From the NCBI RefSeq assembly GCF_000143415.4, contig NW_003314269.1, positions 2,597,060 to 2,661,059 of the forward strand: a stretch of 64,000 nt of DNA, read 5' to 3'. The stretch comes from Selaginella moellendorffii (Eukaryota; Plantae; Lycopodiophyta). Positions 3,929 to 52,556 of this stretch are shown in pieces. Position 1 is the stretch's first letter. Every line of letters begins with the position of its first letter. A program made the translations under genes and the position numbers. The notes under the pieces are model-generated. The model was not told where the DNA came from. It searched no databases and was given only the letters and a program-made list of their open reading frames with translations.

Positions 3929-5549
3929 TCATTCACGTATTTTCTGAACACCAACCCATCGAGCATAATCTACCCACCTGTTTACAAGCAGCAGCATAAG
4001 AGGAAGAAGAGAAACCATTTTTGCTTCTTTATACTCACATAAGGGAGCCCAGAAACGTGTTGCCTGTTCGGACCGCAAAGCAGAGTACACTCAGGGCAAG
4101 CTTTTTGTTGTGAAGCATTGGCTCCAAAATCCGTTGCTCCACCACCCCAGCCAAAATTTGGTACCTGCACACAATCGTTAGCATGAAAAGCCGAACACCA
4201 GTTTCTCATACCGCAAGTTACTCGACACTGCCATGTAAACGCCATATGCCAGACTTGTAGAGAAAATCGGCACATCTTCAGCCTCACCAGCGAAGTTCTT
4301 GTCCAGTGACTTTCTCACACTGATGAGACCATTCGTTACCGCTGTGCCAACCTGAAAGAAAAAAGAAAAGGTCGCAGGAAGAAAAATAGTGACAAAAATG
4401 GCGGCTTACCAGAGATGCAGTAACTCCAACACCTAAAAGCTTTGCTCCATTTCTCTGAAAGCCGTGGACGTGAGCGGTTGCAGAAACACAGGTTTTACTT
4501 ACCCCAATAGCTCCCATCCGCTGCAGTAGAGAGTAAGAAGTCCCTCTGATGGCAACCTGGAAAGAACCACAAGAGTTGCGTTTTGGCAATGCTTTGCGCA
4601 ATACTATACCTGAAAAGCATTGTCTGGACATCCATAGAAAAACTTTGCGAGCTTGCCAGCCTCCATTGCAGGCGCTGCGCGCAAGGACACTGTCGGAGCA
4701 GGAAGCCAAACAAGCATAAAGTCGGCAATCAGTGCCATCACCTGTCACAAAGAAACACCGGTTCAAGAGAGAAGGTAACGAAGCACAAAAAAGTATCTTA
4801 GAGAACTTACAATGTCTGCAAACACGAAATCCAACTCCTTGGAGAAGTTCTCCTTGCGTCGCTCCAGTTCTGCCGCAGTCTAAGTACATTTGCGAATCAC
4901 TCACGAGAATGCAAGTAGAAAAGACGAGGAGAAGAGCTCACTTGCCCACGCATACCTTGGTGAAAATCCCCACACCGCATTCGATGAACACCTTGGTGAG
5001 GAACAAATCGTCGGCCAGGAGTCTCTCCGTGAACCCACTGAACTGGAGCAGCCATCCTCGCAGCGGGGTCTTCTCCAGCAGCACAAATCTCTCCACAATG
5101 GCCGCTGTCACCCTTCCATCCTGGATCGCGTAAGCCAGGTCTCGCGGGATGTTGTCGAGCGATCTCCCAAGGCTGGCCAGCGCGAGCAATGCCTCTGTCC
5201 TGTTCTTATCGCTGCTGGAACCATCGTCTCCGCCGCCAGAGCCGCCGCCATAGCCCCCTGTGGAACCATTGCCGCCGCCGCCGCTGCTTCCATCGTCTAG
5301 CTCCATGGACGCGGATGCCTGGCGGGGCACGAATCTCGACCGCGGCCCAGCCATCCTGGCGGCGAACAGACCTGACGATGCCGCCGCGGCGAAGACGAGC
5401 TTGGGGGTTTTGGATCGCGCATGGCGGAGATCGACGCGTTGCCTCTGAGAGAAGATTACCAGGCGCTGCTGCTGCTGCTGATGCTGGGAGGACGCCACGC
5501 CATAGCTGGATTGCGACGATGACGCTGCGGCTGGGATGCACAGCGCCAT
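3929..5549 (-). CDS. RETICULATA-related plastid envelope protein (DUF3411, RER4-like), multi-exon
   Basis: Transit-peptide-like N-terminus, Gly-rich linker, then ERLLADDLFLTKVFIECGVGIFTK / TAAELERRKENFSKELDFVFADI / VMALIADFMLVWLPAPT ... YQILAGVVEQR ... WVDYARWVGVQKIRE*, joined by GT-AG introns. ATG at 5549, TGA at 3929-3931. Confidence 0.9.
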
Positions 5550-6249
5550 AGCCGTCCCCTTCGCAGGGGAAAAAGAGAATGGCAATTCCAACCTTTAGTT
5601 TTCTAATGAACCCTAAACTCTTAACGGTAGAGAGATCTTTTGCGAGGCGATCGATGGAGGAGCTCGCGGCGTGCTCATTTACAGCGATCGATCGATCTTC
5701 CACGCCTCCATCGATCGCCTGGATCGGTCTTCCTGGAATGTGGGTGAGAAATTGTCTCGACTCACAGTGGGGATTTCTCAGCGATGATCCACGATCGGAC
5801 AATGTGGGGGAAAGCGAGAGATTTTTCGCGTTCTTTTGCAGCGATCGCGTGCCGATCGAGCTCTTTCTTTTGCGGAATGTTTTCGATCGAGGGCGACAAT
5901 AAGAGGTAAATTACTTACCTAGCGTTTTAACTTTTTTTACGCTAGCCAGCCTTTATAAATCTGCATGTAGGTCTTTCAACAAGGCGGCGGTAGTAAGGTC
6001 TTTTCATCGATTCGAGAGGAGTCGAGTTCTTAGGCGGCGACGAGCTTCTTCATTATCGACCGCGGCGTCGGTGAGTTTCTTCTTGTCTCGCGTTCTTGAT
6101 CGTGGTCGTAGCAGAACTCGTGAAGAGATTGCTCGTTTTCCCGTCTTTCCAGTCTTTGCCATCCAACAAAGCCGCGAGCTTTGCGCTCCAGGTGAGTCAA
6201 TCTCTCGTTTTTCCTTGCGAGCCTCATCGCTTTCTTCGAAAGGTGAGCC

Positions 6250-9200
6250 ATGGGTGGAGGATGGGATGACGATGGTTTCGAGTTCGTGGAAGAAGTGGAG
6301 CGTGACGAACAACCGGCAAGAGAGGACATGGAGCTTGATCTGGTCGTGGTTTCTCCCATTGCTGCTAGCGCCGCGGCCCCCTCGAGGGAAGCTTGCGCTC
6401 TCTTCAGCCTCATCGAAGTGAAGTCGGACAAGCAAGAGCTAAGCTTTGTGGAGAAGGTGCTACTGTCCGAGTCCCAGATCTTTGAGCTCTTCAACAAGCT
6501 TGCTCCTGGATCCGTCCGGGTGGAGGATCAGCGATGGTTTCTCGACACGGGACTTTTGGAGGCTGTGTCGCTGGAGACGGTGGGTTTTTACGGGAGCAAG
6601 GGGTTGATGGTGGACATCTTTGCGAGAGAGAAGGCTTTCGTGGAGGAGGATATCGCCAAGCTGAGGTCCGACCAGCTTCCGGCGGGTCTCTACGGTGCCT
6701 TGCACGGCCGCAAGCTCTTGATCTTCTACTGGCAGCCGAGCAAGAAGTTCACGGATGCGAGGAGGAGCGACATCTCTTGCAACTTCATACGCTACTTGGT
6801 GGAGCTGTGCGATGTGGTGTATAGCTGCATTGAGCTGGAGAATGGTGGCGCGTCCATGGCCTCGATTGGCACGTCGAGCAGCAAGAGAAAGCGGACTCAG
6901 CGGCTCCAAGTTTCCATGGTGAAGTCGAGCGACAACGATTTCAACGTCAGGAGAGGCTTTCGGTTGCCTGCCGGAGGTGGAGCGTCGAGGCTCTCTCCTC
7001 GCAAGCTTAGCGAAGGCTTCTATCGCACTGGGCTGCTTGAGACCGAGAAGTACACCCCCAAGGAGTCTTTCTCGCACGATCACGCGACCGTGCCACCGGA
7101 GAAGCTCGGTGAAGTCGTGAAGAGCTGGGGGGACGTCCAGATCGACTACACGGAGATGAAGGACGAGGACTTTATCCTTTTCTGCCAGAGCGCCATGCCG
7201 GATAGTGGTCAGGAGCTGCGTGAGGCATTGGCAACTCTGGATGACAAGATCAGCGCCGCGGGTAGCGAGTTTTCCAGCACTGAAGAGCTCTTCAACAAGG
7301 AAAAGGAGGAGGTTCTCTCGGTGTTTGCAAGAGGTCTGAATGCTTACTTGAGGCTTGCCTGTCCATGGGAAGAAAAACTTCTTCTGGGAGGTGGCGAGCA
7401 GCGGGCCTGCACAGGCTCGGTTGACTTCATCAAGTATCACGAGGGCTGGAACGAGCAGTCCATAGAAGCTGACGAGAAGGCGCTTTCGGAGATGGAGGCG
7501 AAGCTGCTGGAAGTTTTGGCAGCGGACAAGAAGGAGAAAGTATTCATTGGATCGAAAGTCTCAGTGCAAGGATTTTCCGGATTCTTCGTCATTGCTCGAG
7601 AGGGGAAGCGGTTATCCGGGCCTATGACTTATGGGGAGACTTTCACCGCAATCAGGGGTCACTCTCGGGTTGAGGCGCGTCTCTTAACAAGAAATGGTGG
7701 TCCTGAGGTGGTTTCATCCGACAACTTTGATCTCTTTGCCGGAAAAAAACTGGTAGCGAGGAACACCAGGTTCCGCTCCGTGGACCATCCATCAGGAGAT
7801 CATTTCAGGCAGTGGCTTGGTTTCTGTGCGGAAGAAGTGGGACTCATGCTCAAGAAGAAAATCCAGCTTGCAGCTTCTCTGAAGGACCAGGTGGATGCAA
7901 CCGAAGATTACCTTTTGCAGTGCATTCTTGCGGACTGCCTAGACGAAGTCGGTAACGTAGACTTCGCCAAGAAGCTTAAGGAACTGCAAGGCCGCGAAGT
8001 GGAGGATCCCAGTCTGTCGGATTCAGTCCGGTCTCTCTGCATGGGAGCCTACGTAATGAGACGGCAGCAGTTCATGGGGATATTTCTGGACTTGGTGGAG
8101 GACAGTCTCTTCCATATCCTCAAGTCCAAGGTGAAACTGGAACTGGAAGCGCAGCATAAGGCACGGGTGGAGTCTCTGAAGCAGAAGAAGTCGGACGTGG
8201 CCTCGGCTTACAAGATGAAGCTTTCGCAGAGCGATGGAGAGGCGCTTCCAAAGATCAAGATCAAAAGCTGCAGACCAACAAGTGGTGGCTCTTCGTGGCG
8301 AGTTTTCAGCCTTCTGAAGGGTGATGTGCCAAAGATCTCTATTAGCTTCCTGAGGCAGCAGACGCACAGTGAGCGGATTATCTGGAAGGTGGTGGAGTTT
8401 CTACCCCAGAAGAAAGAGCTGGAGTTGCAAGCGGCCAAGAGCGAGCATATCATCGTTCCAAGTAGTTCCGGGCTCCAGACCATTGCTGATATCGACTCCC
8501 AAGAGTATACTCTGAGCAACGTGATTCTTCTCAAGTCTGGCCAGGTTCTACTTTTCGTTAAGGGCGTGGTGGAGTCGTGCATGGCAATCTATCTCTGCCA
8601 AAGTCTTGGTAGCAGGATTCGCATTCCTGAGAGGGAGCCTATGAAGGTGCTCAAGAGGGGCTTCGACTTGGCTGCTTTCGATGAGGCGTCCAACTTCATT
8701 GCCTTCTACGAGCAGTCCCTTGCAGCGATCAAGATTTTCCGCTTTACCGATGGCTTCCGTGAGCTCTTCTGGACTGGCGTGGACATAGAGCTCGACAAGT
8801 ATCACGGCAGTACCACTATCACTGGGCTCCACTTTGTTCCATCCAGAGCGGAACTTCTGCTGTTCGATGCAACAGGCTGCGTGAGGGTGTTTGAGGTCGC
8901 TCAACCAGCGATGATGAAGCCTCGGACGATCCAGTTGCTAGATTCTTTTCTCAAGGCCTGCGTCACGCCGGATGGTCTCTGCCTGCTGGCTATTTGCAAA
9001 GGTGACGAGATTCCAGATGCCGAGAACTTTCAGACGCTTTCAGGTCATGTCTACAGGCTTGACGACACTTGCGAGCTCATCAAGACAGTGACGCTTTCGG
9101 ATATCTGTGTCAGTAGCGTGCATCAGCTCGAAGCACAGGTCGTCTTGTTCGGAAGCCAAACGCACCTCCTGGTACTTGACGACGAGAAGAACGTCCTCCA

Positions 9201-12200
9201 TTCGGTCGTGCTGGACGTAACTTTGGCGTCCCAGACTTGCCAGATTCGCCTGCGCGACAAGTGTGACTCCGCGGAAGAAACACCCATGTCGACGAGCGTC
9301 TGCTACGAGGTGGATTACCTCTACCACATCTTCGACAAGTACGCAGTGAGCCCTCCTCTGCTCAGAGCGTCCCCGAGGTGCATTACATTCCGGATGGTCG
9401 TCAGAGTGCTCAATGGATCCCACGACGGTAACGACGCCGAAGTCGTGAAGCATGCTAAGATGGTGCTGGACAAGCTTCGTCGAGAGAAAGGAAAGGAGGT
9501 TCTCAACGTGGACATCTCGTTCGAGGCTGAGCACTTTGATCGCAAGCTTGAGGTCCGGACGAGCCGGCGCTGTCTGGGAGATTTCTTGCGACGGCTTTCG
9601 TGCCTGGTTCCCGTCCAGATTGCTAGAGCAGAGAACAACAGCTTGCGGCCTCTGATCAACGGCATGAGAATGGCAGCCGATGTCAACTACGCGGACTCCA
9701 TCTCACTTGCGGAGATCGTCCGCTTTGGACTTTATGACGCAGTCATCCAGAGCTGGAACGGGCCTGTCAAAGTTATATCCTCCATGGGTAAACAAAGCAG
9801 CGGGAAGTCCTACCTCCTGAATCATCTCAGTGGCTCTCTACTGGATGTAGCAGGGGGACGATGCACAGACGGTGTGTGGATGACTACTTGCACGGCGGAG
9901 GATTGCTTATATGTCATTCTCGACTTCGAGGGACTTGGAAGTTTTGAGAGGAGCGAGCAAGAGGACATGCTACTCTCGATTCTTAATGCAGCAGTCAGCA
10001 ACATCACGGTTTTCAACAAAAAGGTGAGTTTTGTAGTGAGACTTTCATTGTTTCGAGCTTTCTGACATGCTGACGTGCAGGACTTCCACCTTGATAAGGA
10101 AACCGAGGCTCTGTTCGATCGGTTCCAGGCAGGAGTGAGCTTGGTTAAGCAGGACGAGAAGCTCTTCAAGGGTCTGTTCTACATGGCTATCAAGGACGTG
10201 GATGCAGCAGACGTCGAGGACCTGAGGCACGAGTTTTACTCCAAGATAGCGCAGATTTGCAGTAAGTCAGAGGAGAACTTCCTGACGAGAATGTATGGTG
10301 GGGAAGTGGAGATATGCGCTATGCCACCTTTCAACCGTTGCGAGTTCTACGAAAGCATCTCCCAGATTGCTCGAGGAGTTGGAGCCGGTTCACACGAATG
10401 GGAAGAGTTTTCTGCGGGACCTCAAGCTCATAATCGCTCAAATCAGCTCGAAGGACTGGTCGCCGATTGATTCCAAGAGGATCGCCTTCAAGCTCACCAT
10501 GCTTGCCAAGAACTTGCGCTCAGCCGTCGTCCAGGGGTGTATGGAAGATGGCAAGCCTCTCGTCAACTTCGACACCGAAGAACAGATCGACGATGCAGCT
10601 CTCGGTATTGAGGGTCTCGCTTTCAGTGTTGAGGATGCCGGCCTTCGTCTCGGCTGCTATGGTGACTTGGATTTATCCAGAGCGGTGCTGGAGCAGCTGC
10701 TGGGCGAGTTTGAGAAAGTGATGCCGCGGACTGGTAAAGGTGATGAAGAATGGCACAGGAAAGCAGAGATTTTCCTCGTGGAGCTCGTCGAGAGGCGCAA
10801 GGACCGTGTCACAAAGTGGATCGGCTCCAACACTGCTGCGTTTGCCACCGAAGGCGATGTCCAGAAGCTGGTGCTCGAGGCGGCAGCGATGATCTCTGGC
10901 ATGAAGGAGAGCCTGGCTCTGTGCAGCTGCAAGTGTACCCGCTGCTTCCTCCGGTGCTCGTTGGAAAAGTCTCACAAGAGCTCGCACAGCTGCAACGGGA
11001 ACCACCGCTGCTCGGAGTTTTGCACGTACTGCGTGGAGGAAGGAACGAGCTCCGCGAGCCACTGTGCGGACGTTGCAGGTCACGAAGGCTCCCACGACTG
11101 CAAGCTCAAGAGCCACACTTGCGGCCACGAGTGCGAGCTCCTCGGCGCGTCGAGCAACTGCAACAAGGTGTGCTCCAGGAAAGTCGGCCACCCGGGCGAG
11201 CACAAGTGCAACTCGAGGCAGCATATGTGCAAGGAGAAGTGCCAGCTCCCGGGCTGCGACAACATCTGCGTCTCACCGAGCGAGCTCGATCACAAGCTCC
11301 ACGCATGCCACGAGAAGATGTGCCCGACACCGTGCTGCATGCCGGGGTGCCACCGCAAGTGTGCCACCGCCGACCACTTCCACTCGATGAAGAGCGGTAT
11401 CCAGCACTTCTGCGAGAGCGAGCACCCGTGCCAGGAGGCGTGCCAGTCCCCGGGGATTTGCGACGTGGTGACGGAGGTGGTGAAGAAGACGAAGACGTTC
11501 GTGGGGAAGCGGTCGCAGTTTGAGTACGAGCACGTCTCGGAGCAAAACGGCGTGAGAAAAGGATGCTGCGTGCCGGTTCCAGCTTTCAACAATACCCATG
11601 CTGGGCCTCACATCCACACGACGAACCCGAGCGCCATCCACTTCTGCCCGGTTCGCTGCCAAGGCTGCGGCTACTTTTGCAACCTGGCCATCGGACACCG
11701 CGGGCTGCACGACACCACGCACGGCAACATGACGGACAAGTTCTTCGCTTCCGAGACCGAGGAGGTGGACATCCTGGACCGGAAGTACTCGTGGGGGGAG
11801 TCGGGCGCCGCAGAGATGTGCATGATGCACTGCAAGGCCCGGGGCCGGGGACACGTTCATCTGGCGGTGTGCGAGAGGAACAAGTCCGTCTTTGGAGTGT
11901 GCAAGGCGATCTCCATCCCGGACGGTGCCAGGCACGAGACGAAGAAGTATGGGCCCGACTTTGGCGTCGCGAAAGACGAGCTCACTCACGCGGCCTACTG
12001 GAAGAACATGCGCTTCAAGGACCCGTGCTCGGACGAGGACCAGCGCTTGTTTGCGCTGTGCGCGCACTCGTGTGCGTCGTCCGAGCACCGCGGCGATGGA
12101 GCAAACGAGCAGAGATCCTACTGCACGGAGAAGCTGTGGCACGCGCCAGTGAGCTCCATGTCCGGAGTAGCGGGCTACGTGAGCGAGGACGGGCATGTCT

Positions 12201-12823
12201 TCGTGTGCAAGCACCTGAGAGACGCGGCCAACCACGTCGTGTTCGTGATCGACAAGTCGGGATCCATGGGCTCCCCGGATGCGAAGCCGAGGATGGCGAG
12301 CTTTCCTCCCAGCCGGCTGGGATGCGTGTACGAGGCCATGGTGAGGTTCATCCGGACGAGGCAGGCAGCGGGGATCCGCGACTTCATGTCGGTGGTGCTG
12401 TTTGAGAGCTCGGCGGTGATAGCTATGGAGAAGGTGGCGATGGCGGAGTCGCAGGTTTACGCGCTGCTCGGACACGACAGCTCGGGTGGGACGGTCTACT
12501 CGGCGGGGCTCCAGCTCGCGGAGGAGATACTTGGGAGGTCTGCAGGGGATGCGAAGGCTCCGGCGATTATCTTCTTGAGCGATGGTGGGAATGCTGGTGG
12601 GAGTGATCCGGTGGCGTTCGTGAGGAAGATCAAGAGCATGGAGCCGAGGCTGGTTGTGCACACGATCGTGTTTGGGAGTGACTTGTCGCCGAGGAAGGTG
12701 TTGGTGGACATGGCTCGCGAGGGCGGGGGTGTGTTCCAGGTGAGCTTGGATGAATTGCAGCTGGGCAGGAGCTTCAAGGCACTCGCGAAAAGTCTCCATC
12801 CCACGGTGGCTTCGCTCGTCTAG
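6250..12823 (+). CDS. Giant (~2,170 aa) protein: unknown N-terminus, VLIG/GBP-type GTPase, Cys/His-rich zinc-finger array, VWA domain; one apparent frameshift near 10372
   Basis: Exon 1 6250-10023, 57-nt GT-AG intron 10024-10080, exon 2 from 10081. G1 GKQSSGKS, G2 RCTDGVW, G3 DFEG, putative G4 IKDV. Cys/His repeats ~10920-12210. VWA MIDAS VFVIDKSGSMG ... GGT ... IIFLSDG. Confidence 0.85.
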
Positions 12824-13769
12824 AGCTTGACGAAGGATTCTCTTTGTCTGATACGTTTTGCTAAAGGACAATTGTTTTTGTTTGAAGACTATGGTTTCAA
12901 GTGTTTTCAAACCGTAGATCACAAACTGGACGGTCTCCTTCCTATGCTTGATTATTCTTATATTTGCAATCCTGGAGATTTGTGATATTGACCAGGCAGA
13001 TTTAAGATATCTTTTATCTTGGTATCCTAGACATGTGCATATGAGGGGCAACATTTGCCCAGGCGAGGTTATGTCTTACTAAAACCACCATGCCCTACTG
13101 TATTGTATACATTATGCTAGAATCCTGCACATGAGGGGCGAACCATGGGTGATATTTAGAGCTGTGCATCACTAAAACCACCATGCCAATCCTAGGAACA
13201 TGCTCTAAGACTCTATAGTGTATGCATTAAGTACTCTATACTGTATATTAGAAACCTGCACAAGGTGTGAACTGTGGGTGATATCTCTAAGTCCCAGGAT
13301 CATGCTCTAAGATGCTGTATTGTATGCATTGACCATATATTGCTGATTTGCACTAAAGCAAATAGGACTTTTGATATGGTATTAGTTATATTTTTGCAAC
13401 ACCAATGCTAACCATATGAAGAGGCTTAAAGATACTATAAGTGACAAAATTTAATATAGTACCTAAAGAATAGCTAATTGTTACACTCATCTCAGATAAA
13501 ATTCAAAACTTTGAAAATTTTGGTTTCAATTTTGAAAGGCGGAGAGTTGAAAATATGAGTGATATAATTAGCACTATTCCTACAAAGATGTATAAGGAGG
13601 TAGTTAAATTTATTGGTACCATCTCTAAGCAGAAGTAAAGTAAAATAAACTTGATTCAAACACGAGTGTGAGATTCTCTCCGTGAACTACATCATTACAC
13701 TTGCAAAGAAGTACAAACTCAAAAAATAAGATAACTTTTAGAAAACTAAAAAAAAAATTTAGAGCTAAC

Positions 13770-13950: not shown

Positions 13951-14829
13951 ATTAAATTTGCTCAGATTATTGATGTTTATTCTCTATTGATAATATAAAT
14001 TCTTATATTTTATGAAATAAATATAAAAATATACCTTTTATTTTATATACTACTACTAGTAATACTTGTGTATCTTTACCATTTCAAAAAAAAATTCATA
14101 ATAGTCTTTTGGAGACATGATGTTGTAACGCATCGTGAGAATATATATATCATTATATCAATTGTTGCTATTATTTCTACAAAAAAACTAATAATTAAGT
14201 AAGATTGTTTGAGAAAGTTATAAATTTTAATTTTCTAGGGGGGCATTTTTTTACACACAATTTGTTACATATTTATCTCCAATGTATTATCATTATCCTT
14301 ATTATCATTTTTTTTCTTATGTTATTTGATTGTGCTATGTAAGAAGATAGTGATTATAACTCTTGACTCTTACCTCAATAAAAAACATCATAAAAGTTGA
14401 AATTATCAATATTAAAAATCACAAATATTTGTGTATTTCTCTCTCTTCAAATGAAAGTAAAAGTTAAAATCCATAAATTCTAGACATTATGCTATAACAA
14501 ATCTTTCAAAAATATATAATTTAGAAAAGAACTAAATCTTTCTTTTATATATAATAAATTTATATTAAAAATTGTACTTTACCATTTAAACTATTGCATT
14601 GCTTTGTAAAAAAAATTTATTTCAAATTTATAATTTAAATTTAAATAAACTTTGTGAGGGCCAAGTGTACGGCTATGATGCTGTATACTAATATTAGCGT
14701 AGTGGGATTTTGGTAGCCATCGGATTAATTTCAATTCGGACCACTCACTCTTGTATATAAGCTAGAGATTTTTGGGTTAATGGATATGCACATTTCTATA
14801 TTCCCTTTCCATATTTTATGCACTTACAT

Positions 14830-14845
14830 TGGTGGAGGTGAGGGG
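14830..14845 (+). promoter_or_regulatory. Primer binding site of family A, probably tRNA-Ala
   Basis: TGGTGGAG directly after the 5' LTR is complementary to a tRNA 3' end CUCCACCA, typical of tRNA-Ala. Repeated at 20118. Confidence 0.6.
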
Positions 14846-15959
14846 CATCTTTGATTGTCCCTGAAGAGTGCTTAAATTTGGGATTTTGGTTTAGATTTAA
14901 CTTTTGCATCGTCTAAATTTAATTTTTTCCATTTCCTTTCTTTTTGTTCTTCCATTTCAAGATTTTGGTTTAGATCTAGCTTTTTGCATTGTCTAGATCT
15001 ATTATTTCCTTCTAGCTTTTTTCTTTTGCTCTTTTTTTTTCATTCATCTTCATGGCAGATCAGCAATCTCTTCCTTTAATTCTAGAGCAATAGTTGATCC
15101 AATTGCTTAATGCTATGCACTTGCAATTGAACAACCAAACTCAATTGATGGTAGCATTCATGGCACGTGGTCCAACTCCTCCTACTCTTGGTGCCAATCC
15201 TCGCATTCGGCCGGAGTTTTTTCGTGGGAATCCTAGGGATGATATGTACCATTGGTTCGATCACTTCACAATGATTGCCACATATCATTCTTGGGATGAT
15301 GCTCGACGTTTGCATGAGTTTCCCACGTGTCTCCAAGGGACGGCATTGCAGTGGTACAATGGATTGAGTGCGGCCACTCGTGGGGATTGGAGTGTTCTTT
15401 CAGACATTTTCAAACACGCCTTTGGACATGCCGACGATTGTGATGATGCCTTCCAACAATGGCATCGTCTTTGCCAAGGGCCATCTAAGTCGGTGATGCA
15501 ATTTGGCATTTGTTTCCAAAGTCTTTTGCTTCGTGTGGAGCCCAATATGTCGAAGCGGATCAAGCTAGGAATGTTGTGGCCAACACTTTGTCAAGATCTT
15601 GTCAGCCTTGTGCATGCACTTGCTCTTGCCACCCTTGACGATGCTCTTCGCTTGGCACAACGTTATAAGATGTCGCCTCTTCCACTTCTCGCTGCCCGTC
15701 CTTCAGCTCCACTTTCTATGAGTGATGGTCCTGTTCCAATGGAGGTTGATGATGCTGCTACTCGAGTCCAAGGACAAGGGTGAGGACGTGGTTGTGGCCA
15801 TGATGTTCGTTGCTGGGCGTGTGATGAAGTTGGTCATACTTATCGGCGTTGTCGACGCTTTCCGGATTGGCGACCTCCATTTCCTGGGTGGAGACCTTGG
15901 CGTCAGCAATGTCCCATTGGTGCTGCTGCGGTGGAAAGTTTAGACACTGAGGTGCATCT

Positions 15960-16023
15960 GGGAAACGAGGAGTCGCGCGAGTAACGGAGGGACCTTACAC
16001 GAATAAGTTAGTGACCCCTCCAT
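15960..16023 (+). other. Putative -1 programmed ribosomal frameshift signal at the gag/pol junction
   Basis: G_GGA_AAC in the gag frame (gag stop 15982-15984). pol continues in the -1 frame. 6-nt spacer, then a potential pseudoknot that is better preserved in A2 (21261-21311). Confidence 0.8.
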
Positions 16024-19000
16024 CTTTCTTTCGGGAGTATCATCAAGGGGTTTACTCGACACCGGTTCATCCAGTGTTTACTTTCCAAGCTCGTTTTTAT
16101 AATAAGAGGTCTGCTATTATTCTCTCCGTGTTGGTTGATACAGGTTCAAGTTTATCTTCTAGTGCTCGACCGGTTGCCACACATTGTCATCTACACTTGC
16201 GTCGTGCGGTGGACCCAGTTTTCATTCTTTATGGCAACGACACATGTGCACAAGATATGTGCACAAGATAAGGTGGACCTGGTTGTGCATGTGGGCAATC
16301 TTGAGTTTGAGCTACAGTCGTTGCGGGTGGTGCTGAGTCAAGCTTTTGACCTCATTTTTGGTATGGATTGGTTGCAGCACAATCATGCCAAATGTGACTT
16401 TAAGGCTTCTCCCCTTTGTCTCATACTTCTTTATGTTTCATCCATTCCTCTCACTTCCATACCTCTTCGTCCCTTTACTTTTACCTCTGCTTCCATTACT
16501 TTTGTTCCCCCACTATTTCCTCCTGTATTTCCATTTTGTTCTGCTCTTCCCTTTTTTGATCCCCCCGACGATCTTTGTGTTGCAGCAGTTGACCGGCTCA
16601 TGAAGGAGTATTTTGATCTCTTTAAATTTGACCTATCGTCTGGGGCCAAAATTGCCACACGTCATCCGATTCCAACCGGGGATGCTCGTCTAATCAAGGT
16701 TCCTGTTCGTCGTCGGTCACCCAAGGAGATCAAGATTTTACGTGCAAACGTCAAGGAGATGTTGGAGAAGGGTGTTATTCGGAAGTCGCGGAGTCCTTGG
16801 GCATGTGAACCTCATCTTGTGACAAAGCCTGATGGGAGTATTCATTTCTGCATCGACTATCATCCGTTAAATGAAGTGACGATCCCGGATGTGTACCCTC
16901 TTCCTCACACTGCTGATCTCTTGGATCGTCTAGGGCAAAGTCGTTGGTTCACCAAGCTAGATCTTGCTTCTGGGTACTGGCAAGTACCGATGGCCAACAA
17001 AGATATTCCTAAGACTGTTTTTCATATACCATTTAGTTTGTATGAGTTTTTGGTGATGCCGTTTGGTTTGAACAATGTTCCAACAACTTTTTAGTAGATA
17101 ATGGACGAGGTTCTTTATGATATGCTAGAGGTGACTGCTGACTTCATTGATGATGTCTTGATTCACTCGGAAGGGACGTGAGAGGAGCACATTCGTGATG
17201 TGTGTAAAGTGTTCGATCGGCTATAGGACATTAGTTTAAAGCTGTAGTGGTCGAAGTGCGTGTTTGGGTCCAAGGACACAACTTATCTTGGGTACCGTAT
17301 TTCTCGTGAAGGTTTGCAAATTGATCTTGACAAACTTGTAACCATTCTAACGTTCCCTACTTCGAAGTGTGTGAATGATGTGCAATGCTTCCTGGGCAAG
17401 GTGCAGTATCTCGGTCCTTTTGTGGATCATCTTTCTGATCGCATTGCACCGTTGCGAGCATTGCTGAAGTCATCAACGTTATCTTTCATCTGATCTTTAG
17501 ATTGTGAGCGGGCGTTTGTGGATCTCAAAGAGCTATTGATGACTCCTCCGTTTTTGGCATATCCTGACTACACTTGACCTTTTATTTTGCGCATTGATGC
17601 TTCTGATATTGGTCTTGGAGGTGTGTTAATGCAAGAAAGCCCGAGTGTGCATCGTTAGCGTCATCCCATTGCATATATAAGCTGTATGTTACAACCAGCA
17701 GATGTGAACTACTCCACGACAAAGGAGTGTTTAGTGGCAGTTTGGGGTTTCGAGAAACTTCATGCATATCTACATGGTTCTCGGATGTTACTTGAAGGTG
17801 ACCATGCTGCTGTTACTTCATTATTGAAGTAGAAGAACGTGGTTGGTCGTACTGCTCGGTGGGCTTTGAAGCTTCAGATATATGATTTTGATGTTGTTCA
17901 TCGCTTAAGGAGTTTTATGGCTGATGCTAATGCCCTTTCTCGAGCTCCTCTCCTTTCTCCACTCTCTTCTCGTGTTTCTGATAAGCCTGTTGTTCCAGCA
18001 TCTGTGGATTTTCTAAACGAGGATTCTGTGCCGTTGGCGGTTGCTGTACTTGACGTTCAGTGTCCACAAGGTGCAGAGCAAGATCTACCTTCTCTTGATG
18101 AGTTTCGCGAAGCTCAAAAGATTGAGCCGTAGATTCGAAGGCTCCAAGATGCGTTTTAGAATCCTGCATCACTTGCTGATGACTTGCCTTTCCGGCATTT
18201 ACATTCTCAATATCGCTTTGAAGGTGGCCTTCTTTATTTTGTGGGGACAAATCCTGATAATCATTTACGGCTGGTGGTGCCTTCTGTCTTTATTCCGTGG
18301 TTTCTCTATGCCTACCATGATTCTCCTGTTCTATGTGGGCATATGGGACATCATCGTGTGACCGAGAAGCTGCGCAGGTCTTTCTATTAGCCGGAGATGC
18401 GAAGTAATGTTATCCAGTATGTGCGTAGCTACGTTTGGTGCCAAGCTCGTAATACTCCCCCTTGTGCTGCGGAAGGACGGTTGGAGTCAATTGCAGTTTC
18501 CCATCTGTTTGAGTTGGTGGCGTTTGATCTTATGGGACCTTTTCCACAGTCAACTGCTAGCAATGAGTATGTTATTATTGCTTCTGACTACTTGACTCGT
18601 TGGATGGAAGTTGGTGCCCTTGCTAGTGCCTCTGCAATTGCTGTTGGATACTTCCTCCTCAATCAAGTGGTGTTCCAGCATTCTTGTCCAGAGTGGATTC
18701 TTTCGGATAATAGTCCTGCATTTATGGCTGAGGTATTTCATATTTTGACGTCTCGGTTAGGGATACGCTACACTTTTACAAGTGCTTATCATCCACAATC
18801 AGACGGTCTGGTGGAACGGCTCGTTCAGACATTCAAAGGGATGATTGCGAAGTATGTGAACTTTCAGCATTCGGATTAGGATGGTTATTTGCCATCTCTT
18901 CGGTATACCTATGTCACAAGGGTGCAGAGTTCTATTGGTGCTTCACCATATAAACTTTTATATGGTCATGATCCAATATTACCAACGGAGCTGGGTATAC

Positions 19001-19942
19001 CTTCATGATTGCCACGAGCTCCTGATGCTAGGTCATGGAATTAATATTTGACGAGCATTCTTCCATTTGTCCGAGCAGAGTTTGCCGAACACTTAGGCCG
19101 CATACAAGTGGGACAACAATGGCACTACAACTCCCATCATCATCCACCTGTAGAGTACAAAGTGGATGATTTAGTGTTAGTTCATTTTCCCCATCTTACG
19201 GTACGTGGTTTATCTAAGGGGCTCCTTGTGCACTGAAAAAGGACCATATCGGGTGTTGTGGCAAGTTGGACCGCAACTTTATCAGGTTCGGCATGACATC
19301 CAGCAGGCCGATCCTCCAGAGATTGTGCATGTGCAGCGGTTGAAACACTTTATACAAAGGGATTAGAAGTAGTTAATACTGTTTACAGATCCGCCAATGC
19401 TTCCTCCTGACGTTCCTCCAGATCCCGGCCCATCTACAAGAGAACCCTGACGGCCTTCCATTATTCCAAGAGGAGGGGATGATGTGAAGGCCAAGTGTAC
19501 AGCTACAATGCCATATACTAATATTAGCGTAGTGGGATTTTGGTAGCCATCGAATTTGTTTCAATCCGGACCACTCGCTTTTGTATATAAGCTAGAGTTT
19601 TTTGGGCTAATGGATATGCACATTTCTGTATTCCCTTTCTATATTCCATGCATTCACAACTTAATATTTAAAAGCCACAAAACACATAATACAAATGTTA
19701 AGGAATTAATAAGATTCTTTTTTTTCAGATAAATTTTATTTTATTATGTTTTGAAAAAAATAAATATTTAAATTCTTAGACAAGAAGTCTCCTTGATAAC
19801 ATAAGTATAAATAGTTATGAAAATATTTTTAAAAATTTAAAATTATAATATTTATAGTGCTTATTAACTATTTGAGATATTTTCATGTAAATAATACAAA
19901 ATAAAATTTTTTAAAATTTATATCAACTTATTTATTAGGATA

Positions 19943-22900: not shown

Positions 22901-23729
22901 ATTATTGCTTCTGACTACTTGACTCGTTGGGTGGAAGTTGGTGCTCTTGCTAACGCCTCTGCAACTGCTGTTGGATACTTCCTCCTCAATCGAGTGGTGT
23001 TTCAACATTCTTGTCCAGAGCGGATTCTTTCGGATAATGGTCCTGCATTTATGGCTGAGGTATTTCATGTTTTGACATCTCGGTTGGGGATACGCCACAC
23101 TTTTACGAGTGCTTATCATCCACAATCAGACGGTCTGGTGGAACGGCTCGTTCGGACATTCAAAGGGATGATTGCGAAGTATGTGAACTTTCAACATTCG
23201 GATTGGGATGGTTATTTGCCGTCTCTTCGGTATGCCTATGTCACAGGGGTGCAGAGTTCTGTTGGTGCTTCACCATATAAACTTCTATATGGTCATGATC
23301 CAATATTACCAACAGAGCTAGGTTTACCTTCACGATTGCCACGAGCTCCTGATGCTAGGTCATAGGATCAGTATTTTACAAGCATTCTTCCACTTGTCCG
23401 AGCAGAGTCTGCCGAACACTTAGGCCGCATACAAGTGGGACAACAACGGCGCTACAACTCCCATCATCGTCCACTTGCAGAGTACAAAGTGGATGATTTG
23501 GTGTTAATCCGTTTTCCCCATCTTATGGTACGTGGTTTATCTAAGGGGCTCCTTGCGCAGTGGAAAGGACCGTATCGGGTGTTGCGGCAAGTTGGACCGC
23601 AAGTTTATGAGGTTCGGCATGACGTTCAGCAGGCCGATCCTCCGGAGATTGTGCATGTGCAGCGGTTAAAACGCTTCATACAAAGGGATCAGGAGCAGTT
23701 AATACCGTCTACAGATCTGCCGATGCCTC
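19943..23729 (+). mobile_element. Family A copy A2, 5' part: LTR, gag, PR, RT/RH with a ~1-kb deletion, integrase
   Basis: LTR 19943-20116. gag from 20341, with TGG>TAG inside the zinc knuckle. Fusion junction PDVYP|RWALKLQ near 22183. Integrase 22511-23729. Confidence 0.93.
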
Positions 23730-24614
23730 TGTGAGACACAAAATCCCTAGGCCCCAAAGTAGAGCCGGAAAGGGCGCCACGTGGTTGTGGCCAAAGCGAG
23801 AGCCAAACGAGCGTAACACGTTTGGACCAAAAGCTCCGACTTGAAAAGTCAAGAGCGGGAGTGGAACTCCCAACGAAGTGCTCGAGGAACGAGCACGAAG
23901 CGAGCAAAAGGCGAGGCTCCAAAAAGGGACCCAAAAGGACCAACACATGACACGTGGGAGTGTCCGAGATGGACTCGAGTTGGAGTCCGAAGTGGAGTCC
24001 GAGATGGACCCGAGTTGGAGTCCGAAGTGGAGTCCGAGATGGACCCGAGTTGGAGTCCGAAGTGGAGTTCGAGATGGACCCGAGTTGGAGTCTGAAGTGG
24101 AGTCCGAGATGGACCCGAGATGGAGTCCGAGATGGAGTCCGAAGTGGAGTCCGAGGTGGACCCGAGATGGACCCGAGTTGGAGTCCGAAGTGGAGTCCGA
24201 GATGGACCCGAGATGGAGTCCGAGATGGAGTCCGAGATGGACCCGAAATGGAGTCCGAAGTGGAGTCCGAGATGGACCCGAGTTGGAGTCCGAAGTGGAG
24301 TCCGAGATGGACCCGAGATGGAGTCCAAGATGGAGTCTGAGATGGACCCGAGATGGACCCGAGTTGGAGTCCGAAGTGGAGTCCGAGATGGACCCGAGAT
24401 GGAGTCCGAGATGGAGTCCGAGATGGAGTCCGAGGTGGACCCGAGATGGACCCGAAATGGAGTCCGAGATGGAGTCCGAGATGGACCCGAGATAGAGTTC
24501 GAGATGGAGTCCGAGATGGACCCGAGATGGACCCGAGATGGAGTCCGGGATGGAGTCCGAGATGGAGTCCGAGATGGAGTCCGAGATGGAGTCCGAAGTC
24601 GAGACCGAGACCGG

Positions 24615-24646
<32 letters not shown>

Positions 24647-36068: not shown

Positions 36069-38226
36069 TCATCGCTTTTCGAAAGGTGAACCATAAGTGG
36101 AGACGATGGTTTCGAGTTCATAGAAGAAGGGGAACTCCAAGGCCGTGATGCACCCGCAAGAGACGACATGGAGCTTGATCTGGTGGTGGTTTCTCCTACT
36201 GCTGCTAGCGCCGCGGTAACCTCGAAAGAAGCTGGCGCTCTCTTCAATCTCATTGAGGTGAAGCAAGACCTGAGCTTTGTGGAGAAGGTGCTGCTGTCGA
36301 AGTCCCAGATCTTCCAGCTCTTCAACAAGCTTGCTCATTCGGATGGAGGATCAGCGATGGTTTCTCGACACGAGCCTTTTGGAGGCTGTGTGCTGGAGAC
36401 GGTGGGTTTTTACGAGAGCAAGGGGTTGATGGTGGACATCTTTGCGAGAGAGAAGGCTTTCGTGGAGGAGGACATCGCCAAGCTGAGGTCCGACCAGCTT
36501 CCGGCGGGTCTTTACGGTGCCTTGCACGGCCGCAAGCTCTTGATCTTCTACTGGCAGCCGAGCAAGAAGTTCACGGATGCGAGGAGGAGCGACATCTCTT
36601 GCAACTTCCTACGCTACTTGGTGGAGCTGTGCGACGTGGTATATAGCTGCATTGAGCTGGAGAATGCTGGCCCGTCCATGGCCTCGATTGGCACGTCGAG
36701 CAGCAAGAGAAAGCGGACTCAGCGGCTCCAAGTTTCCATGGTGAAGTCGAGCGACAACGTTTTCAACGTCAGGAGAGGCTTTCGGTTGCCTGCCGGAGGT
36801 GGAGCGTCGAGGCTCTCTCCTCGCAAGCTTAGCTAAGGCTTCCATCGCACTGGGCTGCTTGAGACCTCACACGATCACGCGACCGTGCCACCCGAGAAGC
36901 TCAGTGAAGTCGTGGAAAGCTGGGGGACGTCCAGATCGACTACACGGAGATGAAGGACGAGGACTGTATCCTTTTCTGCGAGAGCGCCATGCCAGATGTT
37001 GGTCAGGAGCTGTGTAAGGCATTGGCAACTCTGGATGAAAAGATTGGCGCCTCAGCTAGCGAGTTTTCTAGCATTGAAGAGCTGTCGAACATCAAAAAGG
37101 AGGAGGTTCTCTCGGTGTTTGCAAGTCTGAGTGCTTACCTGAGGCTCGTCTGTCCGTGGGAGGAAAAGCTTCTGGCAGATGGCGAAAACCGGGCCTGCAC
37201 AAGCTCGCTAGACTTCATCAAGTATCATGAAGGGTGGAACGGCCAGTCCATAAAAGCTGACGGGAAGGCGCTTTCGGAGATGGGGACGAAGCTGCTGGAA
37301 GTTCTAGCAGCGGACAAGAAGAAGAAAGTGTTCATTGGATCGAAAGTCGCGGTGGAAGGCTATGACGGATCCTTCGTCATTGCTCGAGAAAGCAAGAGGT
37401 TTTCCGGGACTATTACTTCTGGGGAGACTTTCACCGTAATCTCGAGGGATCACTCTCGAGTGGACGCTCAGATCATAACAAACTCCGGCGGTGCTCGTGA
37501 GGTTGTTTCATCCGACAACTTTGATCTCCTTGTCGAAAAGAAAACCGTGTAAAAAAACGCCAGGTTTCACTCGGTGGATCATCCGGCAGGAGACCATTTC
37601 AGGCAGTGGCCTGATTTCTGTGCGGAACAACTGGGACTCGCGCTCCAGAAGAAAGTCCAGCTTGCAGCATCTCTGACGGACGAGGTGGCTGTCACAGACG
37701 ATTGTCTTCTGCAATGCATTCTTGCGGACTGCCTGGACGAATTCGATAGCGTGGAGTTCAACAAGAAGCCAGGCTTGATGACACTTGCGAGCTCATGAAG
37801 ACTGTGACGCTTTCGGATATCCGTGTCAGTCAGCTCGAAGCACAGGTCGTCTTGTTTGGTAGTCAAACGCATCTCCTGATACTTGACGAGAACAACGTCC
37901 TCCAGTCGGTCGTGCTGGATGTAACTTTGGCGTCTCAGACTTGCCAGATTTGCCTCCGCGACAAGCTTGGCTCTGCAGAAGAAACAGCCAAGCTGTCGAG
38001 CTCTTGCTACGAGCTCGATTACCTCTACCACATCTTCAACAAGTACGCAGTGAGCCTGCCTCTGCTCAGAGCGTCACCGAGGTGCATTACATTTCGCATG
38101 CTCATCAATGGATCCCACAACGGTATTGATGCCGAAGTCGTGAAGCATCCTAAGATGGCGCTGGACAATCTTCGTTGAGAGAAAGTAAAAGAGGTTCTAA
38201 ACATGGACATCTCGTTTGAGGCTGAA
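36069..38226 (+). pseudogene. 5' half of a decayed paralog of the GTPase-ZnF-VWA gene
   Basis: Near-identical to 6330 onward. Stops, frameshifts and a ~1.1-kb deletion (junction ~37768). Upstream region 35765-35870 matches 5900-5995. Confidence 0.95.
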
Positions 38227-38260
38227 AACTTCTGGATTTTCTAAACTAGTCCACATAGAA

Positions 38261-49383: not shown

Positions 49384-52300
49384 TGAGCACTTTGATCCCA
49401 AGCTTGAGGTCTGGACGAGCCAGCGCTGCCTGGGAGATTTCTTGCGACGGCTTACAATGATCATGATATTCTAGGCTTTCATGCCTGGTTCCCGTCCAGA
49501 TTGCTCGAGCAGAGAACAACAGCTTGCGGCCTCTGATCAACGGCATGAGAATGGCAGCTGATGTCAACTACACGGACTCTATCTCTCTCACGGAGATCAT
49601 TCGCTTTGGACTCTATGACGCTGTCATCCAGAGCTGGAACGGGCCTGTCAAAGTTATCTCCTCCATGGGGAAACAAAGCAGCGGGAAGTCATATCTTCTG
49701 AATCATCTCAGCGGTTCTTTGCTGGACGTAGCTGGATGGCGATGCACAGACGGTGTGTGGATGAACACTTGCACGGCGGAGGGCTGCTTATATGTCATTC
49801 TCGACTTCGAGGGACTCGGAAGTTTTGAAAGGAGCGAGCAAGAGGACATGCTATCTCGATTCTTAATGCAGCAGTCAGCAACATCACGGTTTTCAACAAA
49901 AAGGTGAGTTTTGTAGTGAGACTCATTATTTCGAGCTTTCTGACATACTGACGTGCAGGACTTCCACCTTGATAAGGAAACCGAGGCTCTATTCGATCAG
50001 CTTGGTTAAGCAAGATGAGAAGCTCTTCAAGGGTCTGTTCTACATGGCTATCAAGGACGTGGATGCAGCAGACGTCGAGGACCTGAGGCACGAGTCTTAC
50101 TCCAAGATAGCACAGATTTGCAGCAAGGCGGAGGAGAACTTCCTGACGAGAATGTATGGTGGCGAAGTGAAGATATGCGCTATGCCACCTTTCAACCGTT
50201 GCGAGTTCTACGAAAGCATCTCCCAGATTGCTCAGAGTTGGAGCCGGTTCACACGAATGGGAAGAGTTTCCTGCGGGACCTTAAGCTGATAATTGCTCAA
50301 ATCAGCTCGAAGGACTGGTCACCGATTGATTCCAAGCGGATCGCGTTCAAGCTGACCATGCTTGCCAAGAACTTGCACTCAGCAGTCGTTCAGGGTCTAT
50401 GGAAAACCGCAAGCCTCGCGTCAACTTCGACACCGAGGAACCTATAGAAGATGCCATTCTCAGTATCGAGGGTCTCGCTTTCGGAGTTGACGATGCCGGG
50501 CTCCGACTCACCTGCCATGGTGACTTGGATTTATTCAGAGCGGTGCTGGAGCAGCTGCTGGGCGAGTTTGAGAAAGTGATGCCGCAGACTGGTAAAGGTG
50601 ATGAAGAATGGCACAGGAAAGCAGAGATTTTCCTCGTGGAGCTCGTCGAGAGGCGCAAGGACGTGTCACAAAGTGGATCGGCTCCAACACTGCTGCCTTT
50701 ACCACCGAAGGCGACGTCCAGAAGCTGGTGCTCGAGGCGGCGGCGATGATCTCTTGCATGAAGGAGAGCCTGGCTTGCAGCTGCAAGTGTACCCGTTGCT
50801 TCCTCCGGTGCTCGTTGGAAAAGTCTCACAAGAGCTCGCACAGCTGCAACGGGAACCACCGCTGCTCGGAGTTTTGCACGTACTGCATGGAGGAAGGGAC
50901 GAGCTCCGCAAGCCACTGTGCGGACGTTGCCGGTCACGAAGGCTCTCACGACTGCAAGCTCAAGTTGCACACTTGCGACCACGAGTGCGAGCTCCTCGGC
51001 GCATCGAGCAACTGCAACAAGGTGTGCTCCAGGAAAGTTGGCCCGGTGGCACACTTTCGGTGGCACCCCGGCATGCAGCACAGCATCGGGCACATCTTCT
51101 CGTGGCATGCGTGGAGCCTGTGATCGAGCTCGGTGAGATGCAGATGTTGTCGCAGCCCGGAAGCTGGCAATTTTCCTTGCACATATGCTGCCTCGAGTTG
51201 CACTTGTCCGACCACTTTCACTCGACAAGGAGCGGTATCCAGCACTTTTGCGAGATCGAGCACCCGTGCCAGGAGCTGTGCCAGTCGCCGGGGATCTGCG
51301 AGTAGGTGGTGACGAAGACAAAGACGTTCGTGGGGAAGCGGTCGCAGTTTGAGTACGAGCACATTTCGGAGCAAAACGGCGTGAGAAAAGGATGCTGATT
51401 GCCGGTTCGAGCTTTCAACAATACCCATAGTGGGCCGCACACACGAACCCGAGTGCCATCCACTTCTGCCCGGTTCGTTGCGAAGGCTGCGGCTACTTTT
51501 GCAACCTGGCCAGGGGACACCGCGGGCTGCACGACACCACGCACGGCAACATGACGGACAAGTTTTTCGCGTCCGAGACCGAGGAGGTGGACATTCTGGA
51601 CCGGAGATACTCTTGGGGGGAGTCAGGTGCTGCGGAGATGTGGCCCGGGGACACATTCACTTGGCGGTGTGCGACACCATCTTTGGAGTGTGCAAGGCGC
51701 GGATGGTGCCAGGCACGAGACGAAGAAGTATGGGCCGAACTTTGACGTTGCCAAGGACGAGCTCACTCACGCGGCCTACTGCTTCAAGGACCCGTGCTCG
51801 GACGAGGACCAGCGCTCGTTTGCGCTATGTGCCTACTCGTGTGCCTCGTCTGAGCACCTTGGCGATGATGGTCAGTCACTGCACCGAGAAGCTGTGGGAC
51901 GCGCCCGTGAGTTCCACCTCCGGGGATACGTGAGCGAGGACGGGCATGTTTTCTCGTGCAAGCACCCGAGAGAACCACGTCCTGGACTTGTAGCCGGGCA
52001 TGGCCAACTTTCTTCCCCTGCCGGCTGGGATGTGTGTACGAGGCCATGGTGAGGTTCATGCGGACGAGGCTGGCGGCTGGTATCTGCGAGGTGCTGTTTG
52101 GGGGGGTCGGCAGTGATCGCTGTGGAGAAGGTGGCGATGGCAGAGTCGGAGGTTCATGCGCTGCTCGGGCACCACTGGTAGGCTGGGACAGTCTACTCCT
52201 TGGGACTGGAGCTTGCAGAGGAGATACTTGACAGATCTTTGGAGGATAGGAGGCCTCCGGCGATTATCTTCTTGAGCGATGGTGAGAACAATGGTGGGAG

Positions 52301-52556
52301 TGATCCGGTGGCGTTCGTGAGGAGGATCAAGAGCGTGGAGCCGAGGGTGGTTGTTCACACAATCATCTTTGGGAGTGACACTTCGTCGAGGGAAGTGTTG
52401 GAGGAGATGGCTTGCGAGGGCGGGGGTGTGTTCCAGATGAGCTTGGATGAATTGCAGCTGGGCAGGAGCTTTGAGGCGCTCGCGAAAAGTCTTCATCCCA
52501 CGGTGGCTTCGCTGGAAAACGAAGGACAATATGTTTTCGAACAATATATTGTTTAA
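49384..52556 (+). pseudogene. 3' half of the decayed GTPase-ZnF-VWA paralog
   Basis: Resumes where the 5' half broke off (tgagcactttgatc). Retains GKQSSGKS, DFEG, the intron, the Cys array and the VWA tail. Many indels and an internal inversion at 51044-51207. Confidence 0.95.

Follow-up and report, generated by a model that had tools for sequence, protein, structure and literature searches.

Gene structure and domain order

The window analysed here is a stretch of 64,000 nucleotides (nt) from Selaginella moellendorffii (assembly GCF_000143415.4, contig NW_003314269.1, positions 2,597,060 to 2,661,059 of the forward strand). One gene was found on the plus strand at window positions 6250-12823, in which three open reading frames (ORFs; 6250-10065, 10075-10470 and 10295-12823) are joined. 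The first two are in the same frame and are separated by a 57-nt intron (10024-10080), the splicing of which takes out an in-frame stop, and the third is in a different frame. With the intron removed and 8 nt restored, the intact allele is an uninterrupted frame of 2,174 codons. Residues were numbered throughout according to this intact allele, which is that of the other haplotype (protein P0041). The locus is a real, transcribed gene of S. moellendorffii, and its intact product is a soluble GTPase of 2,174 residues.

A first-pass annotation, made from the letters of the window, had described a nearly intronless gene among intron-rich neighbours. This was confirmed: the gene has one intron of 57 nt only, and neighbouring genes contain introns. 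All motifs quoted in that annotation were recovered, namely GKQSSGKS (9787-9810), GGRCTDGVW, DFEG (9922-9933), the Cys/His array and the DKSGS of the metal ion-dependent adhesion site (MIDAS, 12251-12265). The claimed order of a long N-terminus, a G domain, a helical stretch, a Cys/His array and a VWA domain with MIDAS also held, with Pfam detecting the G domain and VWA_2. Identity and architecture as a giant GTPase-zinc-VWA protein are regarded as very secure. The features are listed in Table 1.

Table 1. Features of the gene and of its broken copy in window coordinates (pLDDT, predicted local distance difference test)
Feature	Position	Strand	Basis or remark
Exon 1, codons 1-1258: N-terminal region and start of G domain	6250..10023	+	ORF with GT donor at exon end; matches P0041/P0001 except for allelic substitutions
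Conserved alpha/beta module N1, residues ~50-207	6397..6870	+	AlphaFold2 pLDDT ~90
Helices (one of ~70 residues), small beta module and linker, residues ~283-735	7096..8454	+	Predicted structure; most variable part of the family
Beta-propeller of NHL/WD40/sialidase type, residues ~737-1001	8458..9252	+	Foldseek PDB E ~3e-7 to WD40 and NHL; VIA Z 16-17
Conserved alpha/beta segment directly preceding the G domain, residues ~1019-1160	9304..9729	+	Alignment, predicted structure
Catalytic-type large G domain, residues ~1165-1440	9742..10618 (spans intron)	+	Pfam, PDB profile search, fold matches
Sole intron, 57 nt, GTGAGT...GTGCAG, length a multiple of three	10024..10080	+	Skipped in RNA contigs; retained in haplotype 2 and copy B
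Exon 2: rest of G domain, helical bundle, Cys/His array, VWA domain	10081..12823	+	Stop of the intact frame at 12821-12823
8-nt deletion site, frame shifted after codon 1355	10372..10373	+	ACTGCGTG present in other haplotype and RNA contigs
Helical bundle after the G domain, residues ~1441-1540	10619..10918	+	AlphaFold2 helices; fold alignments run through it (model 21-441)
Cys/His array with embedded beta sheets, residues ~1541-1972	10919..12214	+	Alignment, AlphaFold2
VWA domain with complete MIDAS, residues ~1975-2174	12221..12820	+	Pfam VWA_2 36.7-38.3 bits (cut-off 27); VIA Z 22.9
Copy B, 5' part, pseudogene	36102..38231	+	85% identity to the gene; 1,078 nt missing (gene 7976-9053); frameshifted
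AT-rich insertion of 11.15 kb splitting copy B	38232..49383		Gene positions 9528-9536 (9 nt) align at either end
Copy B, 3' part, pseudogene	49384..52513	+	80-91% identical; 17-nt and 10-nt deletions, further indels, inverted segment

The broken allele of the window and the gene models

Alignment of the window to the corresponding locus of haplotype 2 (L001) gave 124 substitutions over 6.6 kb and one indel only, the absence of the 8 nt ACTGCGTG after position 10372 of the window. The shifted frame of the window allele terminates at the stop 10468-10470. The protein of about 2,170 aa proposed by the first-pass annotation is encoded by the other haplotype (2,174 aa) but cannot be read from the window allele because of the frame change near 10372. 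The ratio of nonsynonymous to synonymous divergence (dN/dS) between the alleles was 0.27 over the whole length and 0.15 for the part after the break; the deletion was therefore dated as recent relative to allelic divergence, and the part downstream of it as constrained until recently. Thus, the allele of the window is a null or truncation allele that arose recently through the loss of 8 bp, and the other haplotype is intact. The evidence for the deletion consists of the two assembled haplotypes; the single DNA run among the public data (X2) gave no contig over 10372.

The cluster of the best database match contains two proteins, P0001 (SELMODRAFT_408444, 2,121 aa), which is the model of the window allele, and P0041 (SELMODRAFT_402429, 2,174 aa), which derives from the scaffold of the second haplotype. 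The former bypasses the frameshift by an invented intron, at a cost to the G domain of about 65 residues, G4 among them. This model also lacks 38 propeller residues, and its C-terminus differs. SELMODRAFT_402429 is the correct gene model, and the artificially spliced public model of the window allele should be used with caution. The reference Selaginella clone, being heterozygous for a natural null allele, is a ready genetic resource.

Two other explanations of the frame change were considered and rejected. A small intron would have to use GT..AG pairs at about 10262-10378, which give 104, 114 or 117 nt, and none of these restores the frame. A programmed frameshift is not required by the intact allele, and a second, degenerate copy of the gene in the window (copy B) carries a different deletion at this place. 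Comparison of window positions 10360-10390 with 50225-50245 showed that copy B lacks 10 nt overlapping the 8-nt site, with the first base of the 8 kept. The deletions in the gene (8 nt) and in copy B (10 nt) are independent events at one spot. Judged from the sequence, the near-palindrome CTCAC...GTGGAG at the site may favour deletion and make it a possible hotspot.

Transcription of the intact allele

Contigs of four public runs from the same organism were mapped on positions 7000-12950. Three of the runs were identified as RNA-derived because their contigs lack the intron. The contig of run X3 skips exactly 57 nt with GT..AG ends, and that of run X1 has an equivalent joint. Together, the RNA contigs of the three runs tile positions 7000 to about 12800, and a single contig of 1,537 nt (9468-11053) runs from the G domain over the splice site and the deletion site and extends into the helices that precede the zinc array. 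Each of the three RNA runs has the 8 nt in its contig over 10372; the intact allele is therefore expressed. Contigs drop minor variants, and the result covers the intact allele and not the transcript of the broken one. The first-pass annotation had named outcomes that would refute it, and none of them was observed. One was a gene never transcribed as one mRNA; spliced contigs were found to tile the present gene, as contigs and not as one full-length molecule.

Additional small deletions were present only in the RNA contigs of run X6, which is from a separate study. They lie near 11284-11305 (13 nt in total) and at 11934 (8 nt) and add up to 21 nt. These could represent another allele, another strain or an assembly artefact.

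G domain and helical bundle

The C-terminal half (residues 1100-2174) was modelled with AlphaFold2 from a family alignment of 71 sequences (mean pLDDT 90.0, predicted template modelling score (pTM) 0.75). The G domain contains G1 (GKQSSGKS), the G2 Thr in GRCTDG, G3 (DFEG) and a G4 of the RD/KD type (IKD), and these motifs are near-invariant in 68-71 family members. The helical bundle that follows resembles the middle domain of GBP, Sey1p and atlastin. Fold comparison of G domain plus bundle with VIA gave Z scores of 21.2 for Sey1p (323 residues), 20.3 for GBP1 and 19.2 for atlastin-1. Foldseek searches of Swiss-Prot models gave RHD3/SEY1 and GBP5 at 6e-15 to 1e-13 (RHD3 at E 6e-15), and those of the PDB gave GBP1 first (1.4e-12), together with GBP2, GBP5, Sey1p, ATL1 and RNF112. 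A search of the PDB with the family profile matched GBP5, GBP2 and GBP1 at 3e-12 to 1e-9, and Sey1p as well.

The Pfam models gave a similarly divided picture. RHD3_GTPase (PF05879) scored 37.5 bits here (range 33-37.5), below its cut-off of 42.4, and spans G1 to G4. URGCP_GTPase (PF25683) scored 36.2 bits (range 32-36), below its cut-off of 55, over model positions 189-284 of 396 (P-loop to G3). GBP (PF02263) scored 26.4 bits (range 22-26; cut-off 21.1) as a partial match over positions 16-114 of 264. Among 68 G domains of the family, 65 were matched by the RHD3 model, 65 by the URGCP model and 63 by the GBP model, with best E-values of 3.2e-10, 1.7e-13 and 3.7e-9, respectively. GBP_C (PF02841) gave no match, and there is no C-terminal CaaX, the protein ending in ...TVASLV. 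A transmembrane segment was not found either; the highest Kyte-Doolittle mean over 19 residues was 1.62, within a strand of the propeller.

The G domain belongs to the GB1/RHD3/VLIG group, as the first-pass annotation had concluded, and motifs, Pfam and fold matches agree on this. It falls in none of the named families of that group and is approximately equidistant from URGCP/VLIG, RHD3/Sey1 and GBP, an assignment made from the Pfam scores over 68 members and from fold ranks and not from a reference tree. The narrower claim of a VLIG/GBP-type domain had to be given up, since the domain is about equally close to RHD3/Sey1.

Several known proteins resemble the Selaginella protein in part. The vertebrate very large inducible GTPases (GVIN1/VLIG-1) and URGCP are likewise cytosolic and of giant size, and their large G domain is GBP-like; URGCP_GTPase gave the best E-value in the family; both GVIN1 and URGCP are absent from the 30 best Swiss-Prot fold matches. 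GVIN1 is predicted to have two large-GTPase domains (bioRxiv 10.1101/2025.03.24.645074), which would parallel a possible second, degenerate G-like domain in the Selaginella protein. In contrast to the latter, GVIN1 is not described with a beta-propeller, a zinc array or a VWA domain (bioRxiv 10.1101/2025.03.24.645074). RHD3, Sey1p and atlastin are the best fold matches and share a P-loop of the GxQSSGKS type. The Selaginella protein differs from them in its additional N-terminal, zinc and VWA parts and in the absence of a C-terminal transmembrane hairpin, and for the latter reason membrane fusion of the RHD3 type is unlikely. GBP1-7 and plant GBPLs likewise have a large G domain followed by a helical domain, and the GBP model scored just above its cut-off. 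However, that match covers about 100 of 264 model positions, and the Selaginella protein is of four times the size and carries additional domains that are unrelated. RNF112/ZNF179, one of the fold matches, combines a GBP-like GTPase with zinc-binding modules, and members of the present family from Phytophthora have a RING domain (PF13639); the zinc module of RNF112/ZNF179 is a different one, and neither a VWA domain nor a propeller is present.

Cys/His array and VWA domain

The array contains 82 Cys and His in 433 residues, 67 positions of which are invariant or nearly so in 71 members. By count, these 67 positions would suffice for about 16 zinc sites. No Pfam family matched the array even at E-values up to 10, and the PDB profile search, PADLOC and NCBIfam gave no identification either.

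The MIDAS of the VWA domain consists of DKSGS and a conserved Thr and Asp; D886, S888, S890, T966 and D996 of family alignment A3 are conserved. The fold matches (Z 22.9) comprise bacterial and archaeal VWA domains, TFIIH p44, Rpn10 and ITIH1. TFIIH p44/Ssl1 and Rpn10 are intracellular VWA adaptors, and p44/Ssl1 also joins a VWA domain with zinc fingers. A further likeness exists to prokaryotic NTPase-VWA conflict systems, in which a MIDAS-type VWA domain serves as a protein-binding module beside an NTPase, a logic described as 'NTP switch plus VWA' (Kaur et al. 2020, PMC7159879). In those systems, however, the partner of the VWA domain is a MoxR AAA+ ATPase or a septin/GIMAP-like GTPase and not a GBP-like one, and no sequence match was obtained in PADLOC. 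Both PMC7159879 and PMC8195603 (Kaur, Aravind and co-authors) treat other NTPase-VWA systems and not the GTPase-zinc-VWA family.

N-terminal half

Residues 1-1160 were modelled with AlphaFold2 from an alignment of 60 sequences (mean pLDDT 80.7, pTM 0.48). By sequence, this half was not identified in Pfam (E up to 10), the PDB profile search, PADLOC or NCBIfam, and ESM Atlas gave generic WD40-like leads only, at 0.82. Judged from the model, residues ~219-281 (6904-7092) may lend the propeller a blade, the range aligned by VIA being ~226-996. The region of residues ~283-735 has no Pfam match and is the least conserved part, with 14-18% identity between distant members (scored as 301-700).

Among the best 50 VIA matches of the N-terminal model, the only entries other than propellers were the G domains of Sey1p, GBP1, atlastin-1 and atlastin-3. 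They aligned with Z scores of 13.6-14.5 over 197-215 residues, and the matched range of the model runs from ~47-50 to 1121-1125. At the position of the P-loop, N1 reads G-x-Y-G-x-K instead of GxxxxGK[ST], and the position of DxxG is occupied by a Y-W segment (family alignment A4). Residues ~50-207 and ~1019-1125 are tentatively viewed as a candidate second, degenerate large-GTPase-like domain, which in the predicted model would hold the helical region and the propeller as insertions.

Distribution and phylogeny of the family

Residues 1100-2174 were used as query in an exhaustive HMMER search of protein databases, which yielded 1,732 cluster representatives with E<=1e-3, of which 480 had E<=1e-30. 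The best 150 representatives are mostly 2,000-2,600 aa long and aligned from the G domain through the VWA domain. Since the N-terminal modules (~50-240 and ~750-1160) are also common to many members, the whole architecture is conserved and not just the C-terminal fusion. Members are named 'hypothetical' or 'VWFA domain-containing' in the databases, and some are labelled 'VLIG-type G domain-containing' in UniProt.

Members were found in land plants (Ceratodon, Calypogeia, Riccia, Ceratopteris, Adiantum, Ginkgo, Taxus and Cryptomeria), algae (Mesostigma, Galdieria), protists (Gefionella, Dracoamoeba, Oxyrrhis, Reticulomyxa), oomycetes (Saprolegnia, Lagenidium, Phytophthora) and fungi (a chytrid, Diversispora, Gigaspora and many Agaricomycetes). 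Animal members are few, namely those in an acoel and an amphipod transcriptome. The protein databases yielded no member from angiosperms, even with a query from Taxus, which found every other land-plant group named at 42-82% identity. Physcomitrium and Marchantia polymorpha were also without a match in these databases. In some oomycete, EukProt and metagenomic members, RING (PF13639), B-box (PF00643) or SAM (PF00536) domains have been added.

The G domain is the most conserved part, with 68% identity between Selaginella and gymnosperms or a liverwort. The gymnosperm sequences form two clades. A conservative one contains Ginkgo, Taxus and two adjacent genes of Cryptomeria at 68-82% identity; an expanded one contains at least 9 Cryptomeria paralogs with clustered tags (SUGI_0690900 to SUGI_0691520) on one chromosome. 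In Ceratopteris, the genes KP509_35G015100, 015200 and 015400 are adjacent.

A tree of 47 taxa was calculated from the C-terminal half. Land plants formed one clade with 100% support, in which Selaginella stands beside mosses and liverworts, and fungi formed another (100%) with an order like that of the species tree; the backbone was poorly supported. These two clades therefore lend no support to a recent horizontal transfer into Selaginella, as considered by the first-pass annotation. A grouping of land plants with Mesostigma was rejected by the approximately unbiased (AU) test (p=0.004), the grouping having been chosen after the tree was seen. This result could be explained by ancient paralogy with differential loss or by an old transfer.

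The remarks that this architecture was not recognised from flowering plants, that similar giants exist in fungi and that the distribution is patchy were all borne out. A plant-specific fusion was not what emerged; the family is uncharacterised, ancient, eukaryote-wide and collinear across supergroups. A literature search returned no paper on the GTPase-zinc-VWA family, its locus tags or its architecture.

Functional interpretation

The reading preferred here is that of a single functional S. moellendorffii gene, broken in the window allele, which belongs to an ancient family of giant soluble large GTPases and with which a conflict-type role is most compatible (probability roughly 0.6). Tandem expansions, a pseudogene, a tolerated null allele, losses in several lineages and the addition of RING, B-box or SAM domains all fit a role in defence or conflict. 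Cell-autonomous defence or another conflict-related function is plausible as the role most compatible with this evolutionary behaviour. An immune role as such is suggested with less assurance and at odds below even.

GBPs, atlastin and Sey1p dimerise or oligomerise upon GTP binding. In the proposed mechanism, a degenerate GBP-like domain interrupted by helices and a propeller would be followed by the intact G domain with its bundle, a rigid zinc array of about 16 sites and the VWA domain with its MIDAS. The G domain would dimerise or oligomerise upon GTP binding as in those proteins. The propeller and the N-terminal module would select the target, the propeller and the variable region being suited to target binding. 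The zinc array and the VWA domain would hold partner proteins, with the MIDAS capturing an acidic residue of a partner. Assembly driven by GTP would in this way build a scaffold on the target. By analogy with the GTPases named, this mechanism has about an even chance of being correct.

Several observations weigh against this interpretation. The degenerate GTPase in the N-terminus receives no support from sequence profiles (hhalign of N1 against the G-domain profile of the family gave no signal), and it rests on a predicted model with uncertain packing between domains (pTM 0.48). The absence from angiosperms is based on protein databases and not on genome searches, and the RNA contigs are of low depth only. 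Between Selaginella and the members from a red alga, a malawimonad and an amoeba, identity is 46% in the G domain, 44% in the zinc array and 28% in the VWA domain. Such strong conservation of the core, together with one functional gene in Selaginella, looks more like a constrained cellular machine than like a fast-evolving sensor, and would fit a housekeeping assembly factor about as well.

The protein could accordingly be a GTP-driven factor of assembly, remodelling or quality control, with the VWA domain as a co-chaperone-like adaptor and the patchy distribution reflecting dispensability. Precedents for such adaptors are midasin, Rpn10, TFIIH p44 and the MoxR-VWA pairs. The collinear architecture, with catalytic, zinc and MIDAS positions invariant across supergroups, the single functional gene in Selaginella, the likeness of the VWA domain to the intracellular adaptors TFIIH p44/Ssl1 and Rpn10 and the constitutive low-level expression in unrelated RNA runs speak for such a factor. 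It is less easily reconciled with the lack of a match in angiosperms, Physcomitrium and Marchantia, found although Ceratodon, Calypogeia and Riccia were matched, or with the tandem expansions in a conifer and a fern, the null allele tolerated by the reference clone and the domains added in other lineages. A housekeeping function is given odds below even and only slightly lower than those of an immune role.

A pair of decaying pseudogenes in an island rich in transposable elements, with no present function in Selaginella, is suggested by the frameshift in the window allele, the wrecked copy B, the different deletions at one spot in both copies and the transposable elements between and inside them. 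This explanation is largely refuted for the species and highly improbable, given that the other haplotype has an uninterrupted frame of 2,174 codons, that the window allele has no further defect in 6.6 kb, that the allelic dN/dS values are low (0.27 and 0.15) and that spliced RNA contigs carry the intact form.

Equally improbable is a horizontal transfer from a fungus or protist into Selaginella or the land-plant ancestor, to which an intron-poor gene among intron-containing neighbours, the patchy distribution and the separation of land plants from the streptophyte alga Mesostigma (AU p=0.004, for a group picked post hoc) might point, since Selaginella is nested in a 100% land-plant clade with mosses, liverworts, ferns and gymnosperms and with no fungal or protist sequence inside, the weak backbone indicates no donor, and the Mesostigma result is accounted for just as well by ancient paralogy and differential loss.

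A more far-reaching form of the preferred conflict-type reading would make the family a fourth ancient branch of the GBP/VLIG/atlastin large GTPases, which would have been present early in eukaryotes, would work as a GTP-driven coat or scaffold in cell-autonomous defence and would have been lost in the ancestor of angiosperms. The propeller and the pseudo-GTPase would recognise the target, the zinc array and the VWA domain would recruit effectors, and non-flowering plants, fungi and protists would have kept the system and expanded it locally. This extension is doubtful; if true, non-flowering plants would own a component of innate immunity that is missing from the angiosperm-based picture.

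In animals, large GBP-like GTPases have a central part in cell-autonomous immunity. In plants, to our knowledge, only RHD3 and the GBPLs have been studied among them. GVIN1 was recently shown to coat bacteria (bioRxiv 10.1101/2025.03.24.645074). In the well-defined and widespread family described here, a GBP-like GTPase is combined with a beta-propeller, a zinc scaffold of very large size and a VWA/MIDAS adaptor. The family is a candidate for a function invisible to flowering-plant models because it is present in every land-plant group searched except angiosperms. Tractable hosts with family members are the moss Ceratodon, the fern Ceratopteris, basidiomycetes and Phytophthora.

Copy B and the surrounding window

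The local duplication and decay in a stretch rich in transposable elements, which the first-pass annotation had noted, was located as copy B (36102-38231 and 49384-52513). Copy B (36.1-52.5 kb) is a wrecked pseudogene with many frameshifting indels. A segment of 168 nt at 51044-51207 is inverted relative to the gene (gene 11202-11369, 92% identity). The 9-nt repeat that flanks the 11.15-kb insertion resembles a target-site duplication.

Between the gene and copy B lies a gene of the 3-beta-HSD/epimerase family (30981-34680, minus strand), which contains introns and is collinear with the other haplotype. The window positions 14657-30958 comprise at least three copies of a repeat of about 5 kb, which are 88-91% identical to the single copy of the other haplotype (L001 17742-22819); the copy number of this repeat is a structural difference between the haplotypes. 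A RETICULATA-like gene with introns is located at about 4900-5800 on the minus strand and is likewise collinear with the other haplotype.

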